A DNA stretch of 64,000 bases from Bugula neritina (taxonomy: Eukaryota > Animalia > Bryozoa), in the NCBI GenBank assembly GCA_964035545.1, contig OZ037768.1, positions 21,373,700 to 21,437,699 of the forward strand, given 5' to 3'. Shown here one piece after another: positions 41,257 through 58,200 of the stretch. A program made the position numbers and the translations under genes. How positions within the stretch are numbered: the stretch's first letter is position 1; every line of letters starts with the position of its first letter. The notes under the pieces were generated by a model. The model worked only from the letters and a program-made list of their open reading frames with translations, did no database searches and was not told where the DNA came from.

Positions 41257-44200
41257 ATCCTAAATGCATAATTAATTTAGCTTTTTATCTATTAATGCAA
41301 TGTTTGTAAACTGGAATGACCACAAATCTGACAAGTTATTTGATATGCAACACTTTTATTTCCCCAGCTTGAAATTAGTTAGTATTGAAACTGCCGCTCC
41401 ACATGTTGTAGGCGTGGCCAGAAGATGCCCTTGAACTTGTAGCGCACAAGTTTCTTGACGATGTGGAAATGACGAATCATGTGCGAGAAGAAGCTGTGGT
41501 CATGTGCAAACATTTCCACGAAAGTGTTCGCTCTCTCTCGCTCAAATACTACGAGACAATGAGGAGGTTAAACATTGTTATATCTTGTTGAATAGTTACA
41601 TTGAAATTTATTTGTTTAATGTAGAATTATGATCTATAAAATTTTACGAAATCAAAGTTAAAGTCATAGTCTGCTTTTCTAATGAAAATTCATACTGTGT
41701 CTTTCAGTCACAAACTTTCAACTTTGTAACCAAAAGCAGTTAATATTGTCAGGTTCGGATTGTTTTTTAAATTCTACCAACAGGTCATCTCGATTGTTGC
41801 TATGACAATGAAAGTGTAAACACTGTGCTATTTACCTTGAAAGTATGATAATAACCTTATTTGACATGCTAGCCCATCTTGAATTGCGTCACCTTGTGTT
41901 ATATGAGTTGATGTTTTCTGCAGACGCAACTATGTGACTCCTACGTCATATCTTGAACTGATTAAAACATTTAAACACATGCTGAATAAGAAGAGAATGG
42001 AGTTGCTTACTCTCAAGAAGAGATATGTCATTGGGCTGGAAAAACTCGTCTTTTCTGAAGAACAGGTATGTTCTAGTTTACTCACTTTTATTTAGAGTTT
42101 CTGTTCAGCATGGAGATAATAATAGCCTGTAACTAGTGATTATGTTACTTGACTGCAAACTTTAGGAATAACTTCGATGGTGGATGCACTTTAAAAGATC
42201 TCAATTTCAAATGTTGGTATCCGACACTTTTTCCTATTAGGAAGTTTGGGGTTTGCTTAGCCTATTTGCTATAAAGTTATGTTTGCTCTACGGAGTTGTG
42301 TGCTCTGGAGATAACGTATATGATGACCGAGTAGTTGTTTTTAATGTTTAAATAATATCAAAACTTAACGCTGCTGGTAGTTAGGCTTTCCAGCGTCATA
42401 AATGCTATTTCTAAAAAGCAGACACTCTGTCTCATACTAATTAAGTAACCTCTAAATTATTTAATTCATAAAATTAGTGTGAGGTGTCAAAACCCTCCCC
42501 CCTACTTCATTGAAATGTAGTGTGAGTTCTCAAGATTTACTCATGCTAATGCGGTTGGCTATGAATACGTCTGCAGATCAGTGTGATGAAGACTGAGCTT
42601 CTAGACCTGCAGCCGATGTTACTCAACAGATCCGAGGAAACTGCGGCTCTGGCCAAGATTATTGAGTCTGAGAGCAAAGAAGTGGAGCAAGTTCGTAAAG
42701 TAGTTGAGAAAGATGAGGCTGCGGCTACTGAGGCTGCTATGGGATCTAAGGCTATCAAGGTAGTTAGCTAACAGAGTATATATTACAGAGTAGAGTGTAT
42801 ATATTACAAAATAGAAAGTGTATATTGCAGGGTAGAGAGTATATATTACAGAGTAGAGTGTATATATTACAGAGTAGAGAGTATGTATTACAGAGTAGAG
42901 AGTATGTATTACAGAGTAGAAAGTATATATTACAGAGTAGAGAGTATATATTACAGAGTAGAGAGTGTATATTACAGAGTAGAAAGTATATATTACAGAG
43001 TAGAGAGTATATATTACAGAGTAGAGAGTATATATTACAGAGTAGAGAGTGTATATTACAGAGTAGAAAGTATATATTACAGAGTAGAGAGTATATATTA
43101 CAGAGTAGAGAGTATATATTACAGAGTAGATAGTATATATTACAGAGTAGAGAGTATATATTACAGGGTAGAGAGTATATATTACAGGGTAGAGAGTATA
43201 TATTACAGTATAGAGAGGATATATTACAGAGTAGAGAGTATATATTACAGAGTAGAGAGTATATATTACAGAGTAGAGAGTATATATTACAGAGTAGATA
43301 GTATATATTACAGAGTAGAGAGTATATATTACAGAGTAGAAGAGTAGAGAGTATATATTATATTCTGTTATGTATGCTTGCAGGAGGAATGTGAGGAGAA
43401 GCTGGCAGTGGCCATGCCTGCTTTAAATGCTGCCATAGCAGCGCTGGATACTCTCAAACAGACAGACATTTCTATAGTCAAGGCCATGGCCAATCCCCCG
43501 TCTGGAGTCAAACTAGTCATGGAGTCTGTATGCATCATGAAGGTGGGTGACTCTGCAGCCAGTGCTTCTCAGTTCTTAGGTTTAGTGTTGGAAAGAGTAG
43601 TATTTATTTGATATTTATTTACCAAATACCTTCGTTGAAACCATTTTTGTCAAAAAATTTGGTTCTAAAATTTATTAATATTGTCTGACTTTTAGTGTAA
43701 ATTTTTAAACCTTTTTAAAACCATCAAGCTAAGAATATAATATTTATAGGTAACATCAACATGGCTCAAGAACTTCTAATGTATCTCTGCCCTTCACTGT
43801 ATGCCTATCAGTTAGTCAGAAGAGTTAGTATTCCCCTAAACTACAAGTGTACATGTGACTTCTTTTACGTGTTCCAGGGAATCAAACCGGACAGGAAGCC
43901 GGTTGATGGCAAGATGGTGGAAGACTATTGGCCGGCTGCCAAGAAGTTACTCGGTGACATGAAGTTTCTAGAATCTCTGAAAGAGTATGACAAAGACAAC
44001 ATACCAGCAGCCACTATGACAAAGATACGGGGCACGTACATCACCAACCCGGAGTTTGATCCTAAGATTATCAAGAACGTCTCGTCCGCAGCTGAAGGAC
44101 TGTGTAAATGGGTGTGTGCCTTGGAGGTCTATGACAAAGTAGCAAAGGTATTTGTTTTATGTCGAAGTTTATGTAGTTTTCTTGATGTTAGTTTTGTAGT

Positions 44201-47200
44201 TTGTACTGTTTTAAACTTTTTGATAAAATTGATGTCAGGTTTAAATAACTTTATGAATTTCTAGAATTCAACCATTTGTAGTTCTCTTGTTGGTAGTTTC
44301 ATGGTTTACGTTGTTTTAAACTGTATGATAAAATTAAGCTCAGTTGAGTAGTGCTTCACCCATTTTATTTAAAACTGGAAGTAGTAGAAAAATAATTCTT
44401 CTTTTAAACGAATTCTCTATTTATGCAATTTATGCATTTATATTGCCTTTTCATTTTAAGATCAGTTTGTGCTAATTAGCTTTTTCTAAAATGTTTCTCT
44501 GTTTTGTTCCATGAGATGCCTAATGTTTGGTGTCACATGAGTTGGCTAATGGTTGGTGTTGCTGCAGGTTGTGGCACCAAAGAAGAAAGCACTGGAGGCT
44601 GCTTTGCTGGTCTTGGATGACCAGATGGCGAAGTTGAGACAGAAACAGGCAGAGTTGAAGGAAGTTACAGACAAACTGGAGGCGTTGAATGACGACCTGG
44701 AAAACAAGCAGATGGAGAAGGAGGTAAATTTTTTAGTCTCTTTGCTATCGGACTTTGCTGTCTTGTATTTGCATTTCCTGACAACTATATAAACTTGTGC
44801 TGGAGATGCAGTAGTAAATAATTTTGGATTCTGTCAGCCATTGCTTTAGCAATTTATTTTCAGTGTTGCACTTTTTATGCCAATATTTTTGCAATATAAT
44901 TATTTTCTGCCTTATAATTTTTGTTCTGTTGTTGTAATAATGAGGAAAAGGGTTTGAGGTTTGGTATGAGAGAATAGTGATTATCGTATAGCGGTTTTAG
45001 TTTTGGTATGTGGTTGTGGTAAGCTGGTTGTGATTGTAGTGTGAGAACATTGTGATTGTAGTGTGGGAACATTGTGTTTATGGTGTGGGAGTTGTGGGTC
45101 TGGTATAAAGGAAAGTGCTTGCGATACAGTTGCTGTGCTCAACATATGAGGAATAACTATTATTGTATGTAGAACCTTGAAGAGAACATCAAGCTGACTG
45201 AAATTAAAATAGACAGAGCGGAGAAGTTGATCTCTGGATTAGGAGGAGAGAAAATAAGGTGGACTCAGAATGTGAAGGACCTGACGGACACGTATGATAA
45301 CATCGTCGGGGATGTGCTGCTGTCCGCTGCCGTCGTGGCGTACCTGGGACCTTTTGAGATGGCGTACAGGAGTGTACGTATTGCTGTGTAGCAGCTTATT
45401 GGTTCTTGGTGTTTACATAAATAATGTAACATGTTTTTTATTTGAGAAGTTTGTATAATAGCAGTTGGAGAGGTTAGTAGTAAAGAGGTTAGAGCGCTCG
45501 CTTATTAAACATGAAGTCATGGGTTTGATCCCCTGTAATGGCCATTAATGATGTTAGGAAGAGCATTCAGTCATAATTGCTCCTTTACCACATTAGTGAA
45601 AAAAATATTTACTCCGCTAAAAAAATCTTCCACATGAGGGGTTTTCACAGAGATAGCGACTGTAAACCCACCTGAGTATAACAGTAGCTGGTATTATACT
45701 CTACACCCGGGCATGTTTATTATTCCAGAATGTACTGACTGAATGGTATGAGATGTGTAAAGAGAAGGAGATACCAGTGAATGACAACTTCTCTCTAATT
45801 ACTACCCTTGGAGATCCGGTTAAGATACGAGATTGGCAAATAGCGGGACTTCCTGTTGACAGCTTCTCTATTGACAACGGTAAGTTTCCATGGTTACCGC
45901 AAGTTTTCAACAATTAAATTTGTAGAATCAGAATTATGTTTTCTCTCCTGGGTCTTTCCGGTTTATATTTATGAAAAAATTAGAAACTTTTTACTATGTA
46001 GCTGGCAACCAGCCCCGCAAAAATACCAACTAAGTTTGTTACTGTTATTAAAACATAAGCTATATATGCTGGCATTTTGCTAAATCAGGGGAGACAATTA
46101 TTTTATTTGAGAAATAGCTATGGATAAGATGGCTGTGCTTTCATTTTTGTTTTTGCTGACTGAATATTATTAATTTGGGTTGTGCTGCTAATTATTAAGT
46201 CATACTTCTGTTATTTAGAAGATATTATGAATCCTTGCAATGCTACAGGCTAAGTGATTGGTGTAGTTTGTAAGTTTCTGTTTCGCGTATTGCTATTAGA
46301 GCCAACACCTTTATGGAGGCTGTTTTTGATAAAGCCTTTATTAAAGTAGACAGTTCATTTGTAATGAGCACTTCCACAGTTGTGGCACAATGTGCTTAAG
46401 CTCGGCATATTGCTTTTTTAGTGTTTTATCAAAAATTAAATATTAACTAATGTGTAATTATTTCTCTCTGTGACATTTTTTAATTATTTAATAGCTTCAT
46501 TACTGCTGCCCAATATTGGTTGTGCATAAAATTGTATATCAGTAAAGTCTTATTTATATTGACCCATGTTATTAGAGACTTCACAAGAGTGTATTGGTAG
46601 GAATGAAGATATTTATTCTTTATCCCCTTTACACCAAATATATATTATATAATAACATAATAATACAATAAATTATAGTACACAGAATATTTTTAGGTGC
46701 AAAGACCTAAATATCTATAGTTTGTGTTAGTTATTAGATATTTTTCCACATTCACAAAACTCATGTGTCCATGCAAAGTCAAACAGAGCCTCAATATTTT
46801 CTGGCATTGATGACATCACTTCCTTTTTCTCAGCCACCATCGGCTTTGCTTCTACCTTCTCCATTTCCACAACCTTCTCGCATTCTATTTCCTCACAAAC
46901 AGTAAAGCCTCCTTCATGTTGGTATTCTGAAGGGAATCTATGGGTCCAGTTAGACTCAAATAGCTCAGTGAAATATTGTCTAGCCTGTGCTCTATCTTTA
47001 ACATACTTTCTGTTGTTGGCGCACAAGTCTTCCCAGACTGGACTCTCTGCTTCGTCTAGAAATAAGAGAGAACATAACTCTTAATCATTATAACGCTTGA
47101 TTCAAGTTATTCATATATTATCTCTGTAATAGTACAGGCACTTTTAGTAGACTGAACTCTAAGGAACTCTCTTACATACGCTCATTTTAATGTAATATTA

Positions 47201-49147
47201 ATATAGCACTACATTTCAATAACGTTATATTTGTCATATTTGTATCGTACCTTTAACAAAAGCATATTCCACATCGTCCTCTTCAACTATCTCTGGGATG
47301 TTCAATTCAACTTGTTTGAAAGGTTGTTTCTCAAACTCTTTTCTTGTGGTCTGAACTTTCTCTTTGAAACTTTCTCTCTCTTCTACCTCATAAACATGTC
47401 TACAAAACATTTATTTTAGTTTATATTTAAAATTAAAATAGTTTGTTTTTATAAGCAACAATATTTTATTATTAAGTTCAAGTCTTATAATAATTACACT
47501 CATAATATTTTGAATAAAGAACATAATTATTACAGGATTGGAGTTATGCCACTTGTGCTATCGATGCTTTGCGCTATGCATTTTGAGTAGCGTTAAGTAA
47601 ATTCATGGAGTCAATTATTTATTGAAGAAAATTTAAAAAATTGAAAGTAGTAGTTTCAGTCATAAAAAATGGACACTGCACGTAAATGTAGTAATTTTTG
47701 CTTGGCAATATGTTCACACTAAGGATTCTCGTTAAAGTTGAAAGTAAATTTAGTTTTAGTAACGTATAATATACTTGGTATAAGTTCTCACCTCAAGGCT
47801 AGCAATATAGGAGACAGCAGGAGAGCAACTAGACCCAAGTCTAAAAGGATGCCAAAGAAGGCAAAAAGAATGAGTTCTATGAATATTCCAATCATATTGA
47901 GTAGATTTTCACTGTATTCTTAGGAGAGCAAACAAAGATGCAGCTTGTCAGCAGAATCTCAAGTTTTGTAATTAATTTGACTGTTGACGCGACGTAGTAA
48001 ATTTTCTGATTGTTGTGGCATGATGTATTTTTATTGGCAAATATTTAAATGTTGATATTATTTGAAATATTATAATTCTTAAAGGGCACTGGTTATATAA
48101 AAATGTTGTCAAATTTCTGCAAGCGGACTAGATCATAAAGTTTATTCCTATCAAAGCATATGACAACTCATCTCGATACTTTTTAATGCAAATGTTTTTG
48201 GTTTTACTCGGAGTCAAGCTAATAATATTATACTGAAAATAAAATATTTCTGATTTTTTTTGAAGATATGATTGTTATGTTCATAGTATTTCTTTATCAA
48301 TGAACATTGTATTACATTACAGTATGCTGTAGTACAACCAAACACACCGTATTATAATAATTATAATAATGTACTGTAATGACCAATCAACTCAATAAAT
48401 GCAAGCAAAATGTTTAAACAAATTTGCATGTTTTTCACAGTAATATGGAGTTACTTTGCCATGTCATTCACAAAAGCCAGCCTACCTTTTTAGCCCAGTT
48501 GTTTCCTATTTGTTGTCTCATCATGCCTTCCACTGGATTTGCTTTGCATGACTGAAGCTTCGTGTAAGATGCTGCAAACTTCATTATAAAATTATGCAAT
48601 TGCTGTGAGTTTAAAAGGTGGAGTTGTCAGTAGTTGTTAACAACATTCTCCACTTATGTGTTCGTACATTAGAACAGGGATATAGGTAATAAAATAGGTC
48701 CGATCAGCTTTCATAGGGATTTCTCTTGGTGAAAATTCGAGCTGTATTTTTAATTTGAACAAGTTTTGATCATATAGGAACAGAAGGTGTTACAAACCGC
48801 TCTTGTAAGAGTATCACTAGGTATGAAGTCTTGCTGTAGTTTTGCTCTGTACATGTTTGGATTTATTCTGTGATAACAGAAGGTGTTATAAACAGCTAGC
48901 CTCTGTAAGAGTCTCTGTACACGTTTCAGTCTTGTTCTCTACCAGGTATCATAGTCTCCTCTGCTAATCGCTGGCCCCTGATGATTGACCCACAAGGACA
49001 GGCTAACAAGTGGATTAAGAACATGGAGAAAGTGAATAAGTTGGCTGTTATCAAACTGTCTGACAGTAACTACACCAGGACTCTGGAGAACTGTTTGCAA
49101 GTTAGTCTCTTTCTGTTTTATACTACTTTTATTACTACTACTACTAT

Positions 49148-49188
<41 letters not shown>

Positions 49189-49201
49189 TTACTACTATTA
49201 T

Positions 49202-49236
<35 letters not shown>

Positions 49237-52200
49237 GTACTACTACTACTACTAGTACTACTACTACTACTAGTACTGCTACTACTACTACTGCTACTAC
49301 TACTAATACTACTACTACTACTGCTACTACCACTACTACTACTACTGCTGCTACTGCTGCTACCGCTGCTACCACTGCTACCACCACCACTACCACCACT
49401 ACTACTACCACTACTACCACTACTAAACAGTAACTCAGTGCCTCAAGAATATTATCTGCTACTGCTAATTCTACTCTGTCTCATAGTTTGGTAATCCCTG
49501 CCTCCTGGAGAATGTTGAGGAAGAACTAGATCCTCTTCTAGAGCCAATCTTGCTGAGACAGACATTCAAGTCCGCGGGTGTTGACTACATCAAGGTGGGA
49601 GATCAGATTGTGGAGTACAGTAGTGACTTCAAACTATACATCACCACATCACTTAGGAATCCGCACTATCTCCCTGAAATATCTGTCAAAGTGAGTATAC
49701 ATGTAATGGTAGCATTCCAAGTTCAACATAATGTTAGCATGGAAGTAGTAGCCTATAATGTTTTTGTTTGACTGCATCATATACAGAATAAAACAAATGA
49801 ATTTATCACATCATATGAGTGTCATTCAGTCTTTCGTGGGATTACTCTATAATTGTGTGAAGTCACAGAAGCACAAACCATATCTGAATTGTTACATATT
49901 TTTGCTAAAGCTTTCGATTATCCTCAATAAAACCATGAGTCCAACTACAAATGTATGATATGAACATGCTTTCTGCATTCAGTGAATTCCCAGAAGCAAT
50001 GGTGAAAAATAATATTCATCTTGCTTACTGGAAATAGATGTTGGTAGTAATTGATTCATCCAATGAGTTAGAACTTATAGGAGTTATATTTCAATATCGG
50101 CTCATCTACATCTAATACCTGCAGGTTACATTGCTGAACTTCATGATAACCCCTCTGGGACTGGATGATCAGTTGCTGGGAATTGTGGCTGCCAAAGAGA
50201 AACCTGCTCTGGAGGAGAAGAAGAACGAGCTGATTCTGGAGGGAGCTGCCAACAAAAGAAATCTCAAGGAGATTGAAGATAAAATCTTAGAAGTTTTGTC
50301 TTCTTCACAGGTGAGGAGTTCCTCCTGCACAGGAAACGTCTGTTGGCCCTTCTGCATCTCTTTTACAGTTCCTGTTTCTGAGTCACCACCTATTTGTATG
50401 AGCAGGGGATGAGTTTATTATTTCTATTGGTTGCATCTTTCGAGCTTTTCTTATTTTATAGTAAATTATATTTAATACAAAAATGGTTTGATGAAAGTTT
50501 GATTTTACTCTTTGTGTTGCAGATAGTTAAGTTACTCATATTTTAAAGAGAATAATATTATTGCTGCTCGTGTCAAGCAAATATTTTTGAAACTTTTCAA
50601 GTTGCATTTTTAGTTTTTGTGTTCCAAAGACTTGCATATAGATGTAGATGTAGTCTGTGTACACACATTTACACTGTCGATGTTTTCAATGGGTTTACAA
50701 TTCTTAACATTATACAGGTTGTTATATGTTGTATTACTCGTGTGTGTTAACTGTTAGGGTAACATCCTGGAAGATGAAGCTGCAATCAACATTCTCTCAT
50801 CTTCTAAAGTGTTATCTGAGGAAATATCGAGTAAGCAGGAAATTACGTCACGCACTGAGAAAGAAATAGACGAGACTCGCTCTGGTTACAAGCCCGTAGC
50901 TAAGCACGGCAGTATCCTGTTCTTCACCATCTCCGACCTGGCTAACATTGATCCCATGTACCAGTACTCCCTCAACTGGTTCATCAACCTCTTCATGCAC
51001 GTCAGTTGATGCGTCTGCTACTCTCTTTCATGTTCTTTAAATATTTCAGTGTATCAATTTGTGAGACAGAGTTTGGCCTTTAAATCTAACTCTGTGTATT
51101 TTTAGGTTTTGATGTAACTGATTAAACCAATTTGTCTGTCTTATTAAAATTTTTGAAGAATTTACCCACTTTTGTGTCAAAGTTGAGTGATAACTGATTA
51201 AATGATGCAATGTTATGAAATTTTATAATTTAGTATGTGCGAAAAGTTGTGCTATTGTAGGGTATACTATAATGGCAAGGCTGTACTGCATTTATCTTTA
51301 TGGTTTGGTCTTAATTTTACATGCATTATTGGAGCAAATAGCTGTTATTAGTTGAAAAAGTCTGTAAAATAAGAAAAATTTAAATGTTAAAAGTGCTTGC
51401 CACAGTCTTGTTTTTGCATTATTGAAATCATGCAATACAAGTTGCGGTCATTCTGATAACCAAGTAATAATTGCCAAATATATTATTGGCAACACTATGT
51501 GTAGTAAGGAGCTGCTAAAGTAATAATTTAAAATAATGTAAAATTTGTTACCATGAGTTGCTCTAACTTCTTTTTCATTTTCTCCTAAATTGTGTTCAGT
51601 TCTTGACAAAGAAATGCGTTTATTACGACAGGCAATCAACAACAGCAAGAAGTCCAACAACCTGGAGGAAAGAATACAGTGTCTCAACGACTACTTCACC
51701 TATAGCATCTACCAGAATATATGTCGCTCTTTGTTTGAAAAGGACAAATTGCTTTTCTCTTTTATTCTTTGTGTCAGTCTGCTCAAAGGAAGGTTTGTAC
51801 AACTTGAGACGATTTTTGTAACTCCAAACCTAGTTTAGTACGAGTTTATTATAATCTGTCTGCATAAATGTACTATTCTAATTATATGAAGTGTTGGGCC
51901 GATGTATTATGTTGGGAAAATGTGGCGATACAGGTTTGGAAATAACTATGGGAAGAGATTTTCCAATTTTAGAAATTATGCTTTTTGATATTCTCATATT
52001 ATTGATACTCTTTAGCTGATTACCAAGGGTAGCTAGTGTTGTCTCATTGCGTTATTTATTATGTATAAATAACAATGGCAGTTACATAATGATGTGTTTA
52101 TGGTATTTTATTGTGGTGTGTTGTGTTGTACTAATTGCACTATGCAGTTTGCTTTAATTTATATATCTTTATCTTTTTTTAACTTTTGTAACTTTATGAA

Positions 52201-55200
52201 ATAACTTTAAAATAACACTAATAATAGAGGTCAAGTAGATGACCGAGAATGGAGGTTTCTGCTCACTGGAGGTGTGGCTTTGGACAATCCATTTTTAAAT
52301 CCGGCTGCTGATTGGTTGAGTGAGAAGTCGTGGGCGGAAATTGTTCGATGCTCTGATTTGCCAGCTTTTAAAGGGTTCATGCACTCTTTTAAGGAGAAGG
52401 TAGTTTAGATTTATATAGACAAATTTGACATTTTCGTTCTCAAAGTAAAAATTACATCTTCAACATTTAAGCAATATAATTCTAACCACAAAATGTTTTG
52501 AAGGGGTTATTATAAGCTTCAAAACAATTTCACAGCTGAACTTTTTACAGAGACACAGATTTTATATTTCATTTAATTTTCATACGCATATCTCTTGCAT
52601 ATATGTATTAGAATTATGGTGTTTTTGTTACAAGGTTGCTGATTGGCAGATAGTGTATGATTCACCCTCCCCTCAAACAGCCGAATACATTGCCCCGTGG
52701 AACCAGTTGAATGACATGCAGAAGCTGATCGTGCTCAGACTTCTGAGGCCTGACAAGGTTAGTGAGTCATCCTTTGAGTCTCACTGTACATGTGACTGAA
52801 CTTTTAACACAGCATTGTTTAGAATTATATGTTGAAATAAGGCAGTAGTAATACAGTAGTAATTAGTGGGTATGTAGTCTTGTATTTGATACCAGGCTTT
52901 GCATTACTGTATGCTTTATATTTTGTAACACTCTATGCTATACAAAACTCATTTTGATAAAAATTTGTATAAAATCAAATAATATGTTATTTGAGTATTG
53001 AGTTTGAGTATTTTTTTATTAGTTGTTTGATTTATACACAACATTCTGTTCTTTGGTGTCACAATATCGTAGGGTAGACAAAAAGTTTCAAATAAATTCA
53101 TCAATTTCTAGTATATTGTTACTATCACAGTACTGTCAATATTTCACTCTGTTATATTATGGCAGATGGTGCCGGCTGTACAGGACTACATCGTTAAGAA
53201 TATTGGGCCACAGTTTGTTGAGCCACCTACATTTGACATATCCGTCTCTTTCGCTGACTCTATGTACTTCACACCTCTCATCTTTGTGCTGTCCCCCGGA
53301 GCTGACCCCATGGCTGGTCTTTACAAGTTCGCCGAAGAAAAAGGTGAATTTTAACTACTATTATGAATACTCAGCTTTACCACACCGAGTACTTAGTAAT
53401 ATTGCTACTCATAGTACTACAACTGATACTAATAATGCTACTAATACTAATAATATGATGGATACTAACAATATTACTGATACTAATAGTATTTATAGCC
53501 CAAACCGTTAGAACTACTGAATGTAACTAGTTATATAGACTCAACTAGCATTATCTACTACCTCAAGATATTATGAGTATCACTTACTAGTACTTACATT
53601 AGTTACTAGTAGTTATATTAGTTACTAGTTACTAGTTACTAGTAGTTATACTAGTTACTAGTTATTAGTAGTTATATTAGTTAATAGTAGTTATATTAGT
53701 TATTAGTTAATAGTAATTATACTAGTTACTAGTTACTAGTAGTTATATTAGTTACTAGTTACTAGTAGTTATGTTAGTTACTAGTTGTTTGTCATTATTT
53801 AAAATATCGGTTAATGAGTGTGAAGAGTGAGTTATTTGCAGTGTAACCTTTGTTTCTAATAATTTAAAAACTTGCAGCTTTTGGTTTAATGCTTCAACTT
53901 CATCTTTGACTAGTTTTCTTTTTCAGGTTCAAGCCAAATTGTGTTTATTTTACTATTCATGGTTATTATTTGTATATTTACATTGCTAATAGTAAGATTG
54001 TGTTTTTAATTGGCCTACAAAGTCTCATGCATTATTCGGTGAGATTATTTATTTAATCACAGGTAAATAAATATTGCAGCATTTTAAATTATTCTTAACA
54101 TTTTGTTTATCAACAATTTTGAATGTGATTTACAACTCAATGGTAGAAATCAGGTAAATGAAACATCTTTCTAAAAGATTATCTAATGGCGTGTGTTTTG
54201 TTCACTGAATCATTCCGCTTACATCTCCCTGTTTGTTTGCGGTGATCAGTTTGAAATACTTTGTGTTTAACTGTACTCAGGTGTCATCAGTAGGCCACTG
54301 GCCGCTGACAAAAATGACCTTCACCCTCAGCAGCAGAGCATAGGCTTGTCCAAAGAGCAACGTGACTTGAATCTGTTGGAATGTATGTTACTGTAGATGG
54401 CGCCGGTGTTAGCAGTTTCTTCCTGTTTCCTGCTACTCTCAATTGCTTTCCGCTGTCTTTTTGCTAATTTTCCACACATAGATGTAGTCATGGTCAACTA
54501 GCGTAGAAGCTGTTTACATTAGATCTTTGCTATAGACGTTGTAGATTCTAGGTAGAAGAACCCTTACTACAGTGCTACATGTATATATAGTAACTAAATT
54601 TATTTCAATTGCTCTGCAAAATTTTTCGTTGTATAGAAATGATGAAATATGTTCTGTTTTGTTATTTTGACTTTTAGCTTCGTTTACTGATCTTTATGTA
54701 TCTTTTTCGCAATGCTTAGTAGCCAGTTTAATCGTGTAGATCTGTTTTTTTATATATTGCAAATTAGTGTGTCAAATAGTAAGTGTTGTTTCATATCAGT
54801 TGTTTTAGGCTACATGTTCACTGAGTTAGTGCACTTCACATCTGCGACTCATCATTTTATACTCATGACCCAACCTATTACGTTCATGTCTCTTCCTTTT
54901 AAGACTCATGATTTGTTTTGATACTTATGACTCATCCTTTATACGTATGACTCGTCCTTTCTTGACTCATTCTTTTACATCTGGGACTCTTCACTATAAA
55001 CTTAAATTGTGTACATTATGCATACCACTCGTCACCTTGCACCTTTGAATAATACTTTTACTTCTGACTAATAAATCCATGCCTGCACCGTAGCAACTGT
55101 TATTAATCGTTTGAAGAACATAGCCTATCTTAATTTTTCTATGTTGGATTTCTAAGAAAACTAAAGCCCTAGAATTTTTAAAATCATATTTACGGTTTGC

Positions 55201-58200
55201 TTTTCATATCATTACAGGATGTTAATTAACATAGTTTTCCTTTCACTAATAAAAAACCCGCCTTATCTGAGATGTAGCTAAGGTACTGTAGCTAGACCCT
55301 TGTAAATATGTGTTGTGGCTAGTGCAAGCGAATTAATATGATATATATGTAATGTTTAGTAATCACAGTTAATGTATTGTAGGTATGGGAGGCACTAATC
55401 TTCAGACTATCTCTTTGGGTCAAGGTCAAGGGCCAATAGCGGAGCGTATGATCCTTCAGGTAGTTTATCAAAGAAATAGTACTTTTCATAATAATTTAAA
55501 CTATTTCAAATGACAAGTAACTTGTTGTATGTAAATTTATGTCAATATATTTTTGTAGGTGTGTTGATGTTATTTTACTATCTTTACTATCTATTTTATT
55601 CTGTCAAATGTCAGGCCATAGAGCTGGGAACGTGGGTAGTCCTGCAGAATTGTCACTTGGCCGCTTCCTGGCTCGGTGAACTGGAGAGAATCTGTGAGAC
55701 GGTCATAACCGACCCTGCCAAGACCAAGCCCGAGTTCCGTCTGTGGCTCACCAGTTACCCGTCTCCCGAGTTTCCTGTTACTGTTTTACAGAACGGAGTG
55801 AAGATGACTAATGAGCCTCCTAAAGGTGACCCAACTGTATAAGAGGATTATGATATGATAGTCATATATTGCCTCTAGTTCAATATAGAAGTGTTGTACC
55901 TTCACTATATGACCTATCTCTATAAGATTGCATATAATTCTTACTGTTAACTTACATCTAAACTACTATATACTTTATAGTCAGTATTTTGTTATACTTT
56001 GTGCTATTCTGCTTTATACTCTATAGTTTGTAGTATTCTGCTATATGACTGTGTGCTAATCTGATATATGACTATGTGCTAATCTACTATATACTCTGCT
56101 CTATGACTACGTGCTAACTTACTATATGCTCTGCTATAGGGCTGCGTGCTAACTTGCTACGGTCTTACCTAAATGATCCGATATCAGACCCGGAGTTCTT
56201 CGAAGGATGTAACAAACCTCACGTTTTCAAGAAGCTGCTCTTTGGTTTGTGTTTCTTCCACGCTCTTATCCAGGAGAGAAGAAAGTTCGGCCCTCTTGGA
56301 TGGAACATTCCGTATGAGTTTAATGAGTCTGACCTGAGAATCAGCACTCGCCAGCTGGAGGTAAGAAAATAAAGTCATACTGTGTGTACATTTTGTGTGT
56401 AGTGAACAAACTAGAGTTGTATTTGAGTGTTGAATAAATTTTGTCTTGCTGATGACTGAAATAAGGAAAGCTTATTTGTGTTCAAACATAGAACAGTATA
56501 ATTACGTGTTAGATTTTAGAATCTGCATCAGCCGTTGTATACTTGGTTATAAAGTGCTGTGAACTTTCCAGAACTTTGATTTAAGCCAAAATCATTTATA
56601 TATTTTTTTTTCATTGAGAGAATGTTGAGTGTACCGTAAGTCACTGTACTGTACATCAGAACCCTCTGTCTCCTTGTGATGTATCTGGTTGTGTGTTTCC
56701 TGTCAGATGTTCATCAACGAGTACGACGAGCCACCACTAACTGCCCTCACGTACCTCACCGGGCAGTGCAACTATGGCGGCCGCGTGACCGATGAGCGTG
56801 ACAGACGACTCATACTAAGCATTCTGGGTAAGTTGTGCTTTGCCTGACTAAACGTTGATAGTGCTTTCCTGTAGATTTTGTGTTTCCTGTTTATTTCTGT
56901 GTGTTGGTCAGTATAGTGGAATTTATATGGTTGTAAACCGAGTTGATCTTTTTTTTGTCTTATGCAAACATACGCTGTACTGTCATGACATACATTACTA
57001 TTAATATAACCATGATATATATTATGCTTACTATTATTTGCCATATGGTTGGTTACCTTGGTATTCTGTCATATTTACTGTTCCTGCCGACACCTCCGTA
57101 TTATATAGTGTGTACTGTACCAACACCTCGATGTTCTGTAGTATGTTGCACAGATGTGGCTGTGCACACTATAATGTGTACTATTTTTAGTGCTCTTTTA
57201 TTCACATGCTCTGAGTGTGATTTGCTCTTTCTTTCAGCCATATTCTACAACGAGCAGATTGTAGCCAGTGATGATTACAGATTCTCACAGAGCGGGGTGT
57301 ACTACGCCCCTCCTGAGGGTCCATGTGACAGCTACTTAGTCTACATTAGATCACTGCCCCAACTGCCACATCCCGAGGTAACTCGTCTCTCTCTACTGTT
57401 TCCTGTTTGTGTTGGTTAGATACGTCTGTTATTCTGGGTTCTGCTCATAAAACTCACACAAGGTTATAGTCACAATCCCTGTGAGAACCGATGGAAAGGG
57501 TTTTTGGAGCGGGCTAAAGACTTATTCATATGTAACACAGAAGCAATTATGATTGGATGCTCTTTCTAACATCACCAATGGCCTTTGTCGGGATTCGAAC
57601 CCATGACTTCGTGTTTACTAAGCCAACATTTAACCTTAGTGTGTGATTAGTTAACCTCCCTCTTATTTTGCTCACAATTTTGAAAATAAAAGTTGAGTTA
57701 TTCAACTTGGAAAGCTGACATTATGAGTTCAGACTATACTTCTTTTCTGCAGGTGTTTGGACTCCACGAGAATGCAGATATCTCTAAGGACCAGCATGAA
57801 ACACAGCAGCTCTTTAGTGGTATATTGCTCACACTTCCCCGACAGGTAACCATGGCAACATAACTTTCCTTAGCAACGGTTACTAACGATGCAAACCTTG
57901 TAGCATTAGTTCCCACAATAACTATGGTAATAACGATGTCATCCCATGTGAACCCATAGCATAGTGTATACAAGTTTATACTCCCCACTAATTTTTCAAC
58001 AATTCATTAACACTTTGTTATCTCACAGCACTCATAGTATAATGTGCAGATGAAAAGTTGCATGTATTTCAGGTTAGCATTTTCTTAGTGCTGTATTTAG
58101 TTCTGAGAAAGGAAAATCATTGTATATAACTGAGCCATAAGTTTTGAGATAGCTATATCACATGCAATATTGGCGTATGTTATTGCAAATATTGGAGAAG

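Follow-up and report, generated by a model that had tools for sequence, protein, structure and literature searches.

In a 64,000-nucleotide stretch of the Bugula neritina genome (assembly GCA_964035545.1, contig OZ037768.1, positions 21,373,700 to 21,437,699 of the forward strand; hereafter the window), the minus strand of one dynein heavy-chain intron very probably carries a real, lineage-restricted coding gene. We call it copy A; a second copy, B, lies elsewhere on the same chromosome. The reading that we favour, and consider likely, is that copy A is a genuine protein-coding gene of a two-copy family found only in Bugula, nested antisense in the dynein intron and encoding a single-pass membrane protein. 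The family itself is already on record: it has been deposited as a hypothetical protein, and copy A is one of its two paralogues.

Gene model of copy A in its host intron

Reading the minus strand directly and translating the exons singly, we obtained the model 47895-47792 + 47399-47251 + 47055-46727, which contains no internal stop. Its coding length is 104 + 149 + 329 = 582 nucleotides (nt), giving 193 codons and a stop, and the exon phases are compatible. The locus and the host exons on either side of it are laid out as follows, with GC standing for guanine-plus-cytosine content:

45729-45878, plus strand: host dynein heavy-chain exon upstream of the intron, with RNA contigs and a weak Pfam AAA_9 match (profile positions 1-17)
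45879-48944, plus strand: host dynein intron of 3066 nt, enclosing the entire nested gene; junction 45878-48945, GT..AG, found in RNA
46612-46617, minus strand: candidate polyadenylation signal AATAAA, read from the sequence, within the copy-specific 3' flank
46727-47055, minus strand: exon 3 with the TAA stop; acceptor ttctag before ACGAAG; acidic tail with 5 Cys, 3 His and 3 Trp
47056-47250, minus strand: intron 2, GT..AG, GC 28.2%
47251-47399, minus strand: exon 2; acceptor ttgtag before ACATG; donor TTAAAG/gtacga; charged, acidic linker
47400-47791, minus strand: intron 1, GT..AG, GC 25.5%, copy-A-specific
47792-47895, minus strand: exon 1, 34 codons and 2 nt; ATG at 47895; donor TTGAG/gtgaga; hydrophobic N-terminal anchor
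47896-48034, minus strand: conserved upstream block, likely a 5' untranslated region (UTR) or core promoter; 138 of 139 bases identical to copy B; holds an in-frame TAA
48945-49082, plus strand: downstream host dynein heavy-chain exon, Pfam AAA_9 (PF12781) with E = 8.4e-15 (profile positions 18-62), with RNA contigs

The original prediction had described a complete three-exon gene on this strand, and each of its elements was reproduced: GT-AG borders, matching phases, upstream stop, favourable start context, AATAAA and the peptide pieces. The upstream in-frame TAA occupies 47922-47920, eight codons before the ATG, which has an A at -3. The AATAAA at 46617-46612 lies about 110 nt past the stop codon and is a candidate only, such hexamers being frequent in AT-rich DNA. 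A mechanical list of open reading frames (ORFs) represents the locus only by unconnected pieces of 35, 58 and 99 amino acids. The GC of the copy A exons (36-41%) differs from that of its two introns (25-28%). Because of this contrast, of the recurrence of the same exons and splice sites in five other sequences and of the frame test, the latter two described below, we regard the model as going beyond chance.

The host is an axonemal-type dynein heavy-chain gene. Its splice from 45878 to 48945 was seen in RNA contigs of all four runs, which come from four studies, and the intron splits the AAA_9 domain of the heavy chain. The nested model thus sits wholly inside one established host intron, on the strand opposite to the host. 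At 3.07 kilobases (kb) this intron is large for the gene, as had been claimed: neighbouring dynein introns mostly measure about 0.3-0.6 kb, a rough figure taken only from the spacing of dynein-like open frames.

Animal genomes are known to contain nested intronic genes, which are enclosed entirely by one intron of another gene and frequently run antisense to it. With the nested intronic genes of other animals copy A shares a whole coding unit within one oversized host intron, the opposite orientation and introns of its own. Unlike them in general, it is one of a duplicate pair rather than a unique insertion, and its independent transcription is as yet a prediction.

Copy B, orthologous contigs and selection on the coding frame

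A DNA search of the 216,009,554-base genome returned exactly one further copy, B, at C4:21963782-21965172, which is 543 kb from copy A on the same chromosome and in the same orientation. The Bugula neritina assembly has a published size of 216.00 Mb (PMC11480708). Likeness between the two copies follows the gene model closely. It begins abruptly at 48034, and from there to 47774 (139 nt of upstream sequence, exon 1 and the first 18 nt of intron 1) identity is 98.1%; within exon 1 the copies differ by two synonymous and zero nonsynonymous changes. The remainder of intron 1 is unalignable (about 53-56% identity with forced gaps). Likeness restarts a few bases before the acceptor of exon 2, which is 96.0% identical with zero indels; intron 2, less conserved than its flanking exons, is 86.1% identical with five gap columns in 194 nt; exon 3 reaches 95.1%, again with zero indels. 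Within a few bases past the stop codon the likeness ends.

Four additional genomic contigs (L007 to L010) were obtained via the protein cluster, and their non-coding parts sort them by copy. L008, from the 2020 draft genome GCA_010799875.2, and L010 carry the intron 1 and 3' flank of copy B (90.6% and 94.2% identity), whereas L007 and L009, both Joint Genome Institute (JGI) metagenome contigs, carry those of copy A (89.9% in intron 1 and 93-96% in the 3' flank, the region in which the AATAAA lies); cross-type identities of about 50% in the same regions mean that A and B cannot be aligned there. By these copy-specific introns and flanks, L007 and L009 are A orthologues, L008 and L010 B orthologues. 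In all six sequences both introns retain their acceptor and donor, and exon 3 is open. Since flanks of both types occur in diverged contigs, we date the duplication before the split of the sequenced B. neritina lineages, whose non-coding sequences are about 10% apart.

A deposited protein of 193 amino acids, KAF6016779.1 (hypothetical protein EB796_024912; UniProt A0A7J7IS61_BUGNE), shares with copy A its length, its three coding exons and both junction residues. The hydrophobic anchor differs at a single residue (I6L), the exon-1 and exon-3 peptides are 97% and 92% identical, and at 90% identity the protein clusters with the exon-3 ORFs. The upstream region, intron 1 and 3' flank of its gene are all of B type, so that it is the orthologue of copy B and not of copy A; its neighbours are a Cpn60/TCP1 gene, an APH-domain gene and a gene for 294 amino acids, with no dynein intron around it. 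At the DNA level, all three exons of copy A match those of L008 at 94-95% identity and without indels. KAF6016779.1 was predicted by AUGUSTUS with transcriptome hints and has no described function (PMC7576161). The family model gains support from this record, as AUGUSTUS independently arrived at the same 193-residue model for the B orthologue. The orphan status that had been assigned to copy A therefore stands in one respect, the lack of a recognisable family, and falls in another: the gene is not single, having a second copy 543 kb away whose orthologue is already in GenBank and UniProt.

As a separate observation, the B orthologue on L008 (6379-9327) is arranged head to head with the 294-residue gene, which has no Pfam family, with about 670 nt between their coding starts. 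Upstream of the conserved 5' block of copy B, RNA contigs extend for at least 381 nt, so possibly the transcripts overlap or one bidirectional promoter serves both genes.

Substitution patterns were measured as the ratio of nonsynonymous to synonymous rates (dN/dS) by the Nei-Gojobori method (NG86), summed exon by exon. Between copies A and B dN/dS is 0.20 at dS 0.124, a synonymous divergence similar to that of intron 2 (0.154). Between A and its orthologues it is 0.12-0.15 at dS of about 0.23, and over all pairs it ranges from 0.12 to 0.33. In a six-frame control the predicted frame gave the lowest ratio (0.20) and, alone of the six, was free of stops; on the plus strand, the frame with the same wobble positions reached 0.30 and contains stops, and the other four frames ranged from 0.8 to 2.1. 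Coding on the plus strand was rejected, as the wobble-sharing frame is interrupted by these stops and has no splice signals.

Changes private to copy A speak for its own selection, since they cannot have been imported from B. Eight of them are synonymous and six nonsynonymous, compared with about 20% synonymous expected (binomial p = 0.002), with the caveat that the A branch is long in both exon 2 and intron 2, and some of these changes may belong to the branch of the other sequences. A rough hand calculation indicates that, even allowing for such a share, a neutral A branch would predict about three times the nonsynonymous changes observed. Together these comparisons support purifying selection on copy A in the predicted frame, and the selection that had been anticipated for the gene is borne out, with the predicted frame the best of six.

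No relative of the family was found outside Bugula. A phmmer search with exon 3 against 1.84 billion representatives recovered the Bugula cluster only; word-seeded searches with exon 3, KAF6016779.1 and the exon 1 ORF gave nothing past this cluster; and a PDB sequence search gave no relative. In Pfam no family exceeded its cut-off; the sole row, Get5_C (E = 0.078), was dismissed as noise, scoring 13 bits against a cut-off of 22.9. Metagenome scans with the protein and with an exon 1 DNA pattern were blank, these scans possibly leaving out records close to this genome. Rfam contains no family matching 46400-48300, and the conserved 5' block (99%) is hence not a known RNA. The earlier claim of a lineage-restricted protein without recognisable family agrees with these results, and the family is so far known only from B. 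neritina in the databases searched, other bryozoan genomes lying outside the search.

The lack of any homologue or domain, together with the fairly open wobble-sharing frame on the plus strand and its dN/dS of 0.30, would suit the view that there is no gene at all: the exons could be ORFs open by chance, a piece of a transposon or non-coding sequence conserved within the dynein intron. We hold this to be exceedingly improbable and already largely refuted. Synonymous changes are in strong excess in one frame, the only one free of stops; conservation falls at the exon borders, where GC content also changes; and since copy B has no dynein gene around it, the conservation cannot be put down to the dynein intron. 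The genome contains two copies only, and the parts of the dynein intron flanking the nested gene are single copy. With such flanks, and with no meaningful terminal repeats found beside the nested gene, a transposon origin was rejected.

Predicted membrane protein

Whole-protein analyses were carried out on the stored KAF6016779.1, the B orthologue, as a stand-in for the copy A product. Residues 1-34 contain no Lys or Arg, 19-residue Kyte-Doolittle windows average about 2.3 over residues 1-31, and the exon 1 peptide of copy A has a mean of 2.49. In the AlphaFold model, built from a single sequence, residues 2-59 form a helix, and the predicted local distance difference test (pLDDT) is 94-97 for residues 1-30. 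The protein thus has a hydrophobic N-terminal membrane helix. The original prediction of a membrane-anchored product is well founded in this strongly hydrophobic segment, whose length suffices to span a bilayer and whose helix is confidently modelled.

Exons 2 and 3 encode something quite different. The tail of copy A is acidic, with 14 Asp and Glu against 8 Lys and Arg in exon 2 and 23 against 12 in exon 3. Exon 3 contains CxxxxC, HxxCxC and a double LFxxxWTHxF motif, all retained in the six sequences. The last is an internal repeat (46730-47053) whose two copies are about 60 residues apart (BLASTP E = 0.001 in KAF6016779.1), and CxC follows the second. The Cys/His region has no Pfam or PDB match, and its pLDDT is below 50.

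We propose that the product would be a 193-residue single-pass membrane protein, in which residues 1-34, encoded by exon 1, would serve as an uncleaved anchor and exons 2 and 3 would supply a highly acidic, largely disordered tail with a conserved Cys/His/Trp motif. The N-terminus would face outwards and the tail the cytosol, as suggested by the very short N-terminus, the long hydrophobic stretch and the presence of Arg35 and His36 right after it. In that orientation a metal or a partner protein might be bound by the Cys/His cluster.

Transcripts, probable gene conversion and the standing of copy A

Eight putative RNA runs share small fractions of the region's words, and contigs of four of them were placed on the window; such contigs reveal neither strand nor absence. 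All four runs have contigs over 47774-48034 (depths 2.5-21), and two of the four over the 3' half of exon 3, at a depth of about 4.5. The family is transcribed at a low level. At 47774, 48034 and 46724 the contigs have loose ends that are absent from the window and match, with few mismatches, the intron 1, upstream region and 3' flank of copy B. Variant bases within the contigs are B-type states (47866 and 47921) or the I6L state of KAF6016779.1 (47880). From these loose ends and variant bases, the contigs on exons 1 and 3 come from B-like loci of related individuals. Position 47774 was considered as a splice site and rejected: it is the point where copies A and B cease being alike. In run X1, a metatranscriptome made from total RNA whose host is more divergent, contigs with a depth near 5 also lie on parts of the dynein intron, A-type intron 1 across the exon 1 donor among them; this fits pre-mRNA or DNA carry-over. 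That copy A itself is transcribed and spliced is an inference.

The 5' block tells of contact between the paralogues. Between 47774-48034 and L006 4913-5173, A and B are 98.1% alike, whereas B matches its 2020 draft orthologue at only 95.0%, and among the six sequences no exonic site groups them by locus type. As A and B within one genome are closer in this block than B is to its orthologue, the comparison suggests that the paralogues have recently undergone gene conversion, confined to a sharply bounded tract of about 260 nt. The two copies would then still be exchanging their 5' ends.

Several of the results weigh against the reading that we favour. Spliced minus-strand RNA had been expected across 47792/47399 and 47251/47055; neither junction occurs in any contig of the four runs, in which only the dynein joint is present, and the depth over exon 2 is zero in all four. 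The exon contigs derive from a B-like locus and none can be assigned to the exons of copy A. One contig of 577 nt continues past the exon 1 donor for 168 nt of unspliced intron 1, a reading in which the frame stops after 35 codons. Conversion from a functional B could help to keep A looking intact, and exon 2 and intron 2 place copy A on a long branch, as mentioned above. In the A orthologue L007 (JGI 3300003318, around 395-400), exon 2 has a 5-nt insertion, a tandem AAACA, which shifts the frame and leads to a stop four codons on. Finally, AlphaFold pLDDT is below 50 for residues 60-193, which makes the model uninformative past the helix (mean pLDDT 51), and the ESM Atlas model is likewise poor (pLDDT 0.50).

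On another reading only copy B would be functional and copy A a silent or decaying duplicate, looking intact largely through recent origin and conversion from B. Every RNA contig on the family exons has B-type flanks; the 5' block bears the mark of conversion; the L007 orthologue is frameshifted; copy A has neither the 3' UTR of B nor its upstream region beyond 139 nt; and exon 2 of A has six private changes, three of them nonsynonymous, where the other sequences differ by at most two. We find this alternative doubtful, though of real weight. The synonymous excess among the A-private changes is not importable from B, and were half of these changes to fall on a constrained sister branch, a neutral A would still, by the rough calculation above, have about three times more nonsynonymous ones. 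Over 582 coding nt the two copies differ by zero indels, as opposed to the five gap columns in 194 nt of intron 2. The other A orthologue, L009, is free of the 5-nt insertion and intact where covered, apart from 3 nt lost in frame from exon 3, and the A locus has been retained in two lineages about 10% apart. Unless the L007 insertion is an assembly error, the intron copy may be dispensable in some lineages or haplotypes.

The unspliced contigs raise another alternative, in which the exon 1 donor is read through and the product is a 35-residue hydrophobic micropeptide or a non-coding RNA, with exons 2 and 3 left untranslated. Contigs of runs X2, X3 and X6 do pass the donor into B-like intron 1, where a TGA or TAA follows one codon on, and exon 2 is not covered by any contig. 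We judge it very unlikely. Exons 2 and 3 have a dN/dS of about 0.2 in exactly the frame that splicing from 47792 would set, and, the L007 insertion and L009 deletion aside, they are free of indels and stops in the six sequences, with conserved splice sites. Moreover, the depths are just 2.5-21, a range in which pre-mRNA and retained introns are commonly assembled, and contigs cannot prove absence.

For copy A as a protein-coding nested gene, a broader scenario can be drawn. A young Bugula family would have placed a working copy in a dynein intron, both copies would have stayed under selection while converting their 5' ends, and copy A would be expressed antisense in ciliated cells with its output tied to host activity. 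Taken as a whole this is quite unlikely, and the coupling to, or interference with, dynein expression that had been suggested is pure conjecture.

Other parts of the host gene also contain unusual sequence. At 42768-43344, in another dynein intron, a long tandem array can be read without stops in two plus-strand frames, as YILQSRE... and as SIYYRVE... repeats. Some 100 TAC units form a microsatellite at 49121-49425, beginning about 40 nt past the dynein exon that ends near 49082, with several frames open on both strands. Between recognisable dynein exons, 53351-55373 offers about 2 kb without an obvious dynein open frame, possibly a further intron of unusual size with room for something inside it.

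Neither nested genes nor hypothetical orphan proteins are rare. Copy A opens no long-standing question: it would be an ordinary nested, lineage-restricted gene, as yet with no tie to the biology of dynein or cilia. If the favoured reading is true, it would help in annotating the chromosome-level Bugula neritina genome and in studying how, in a phylum that has been little sampled, orphan genes come to spread and to last. It would also offer a tidy case of a lineage-restricted gene that has survived duplication into a host intron, one in which purifying selection can be measured and concerted evolution with the paralogue can be seen.

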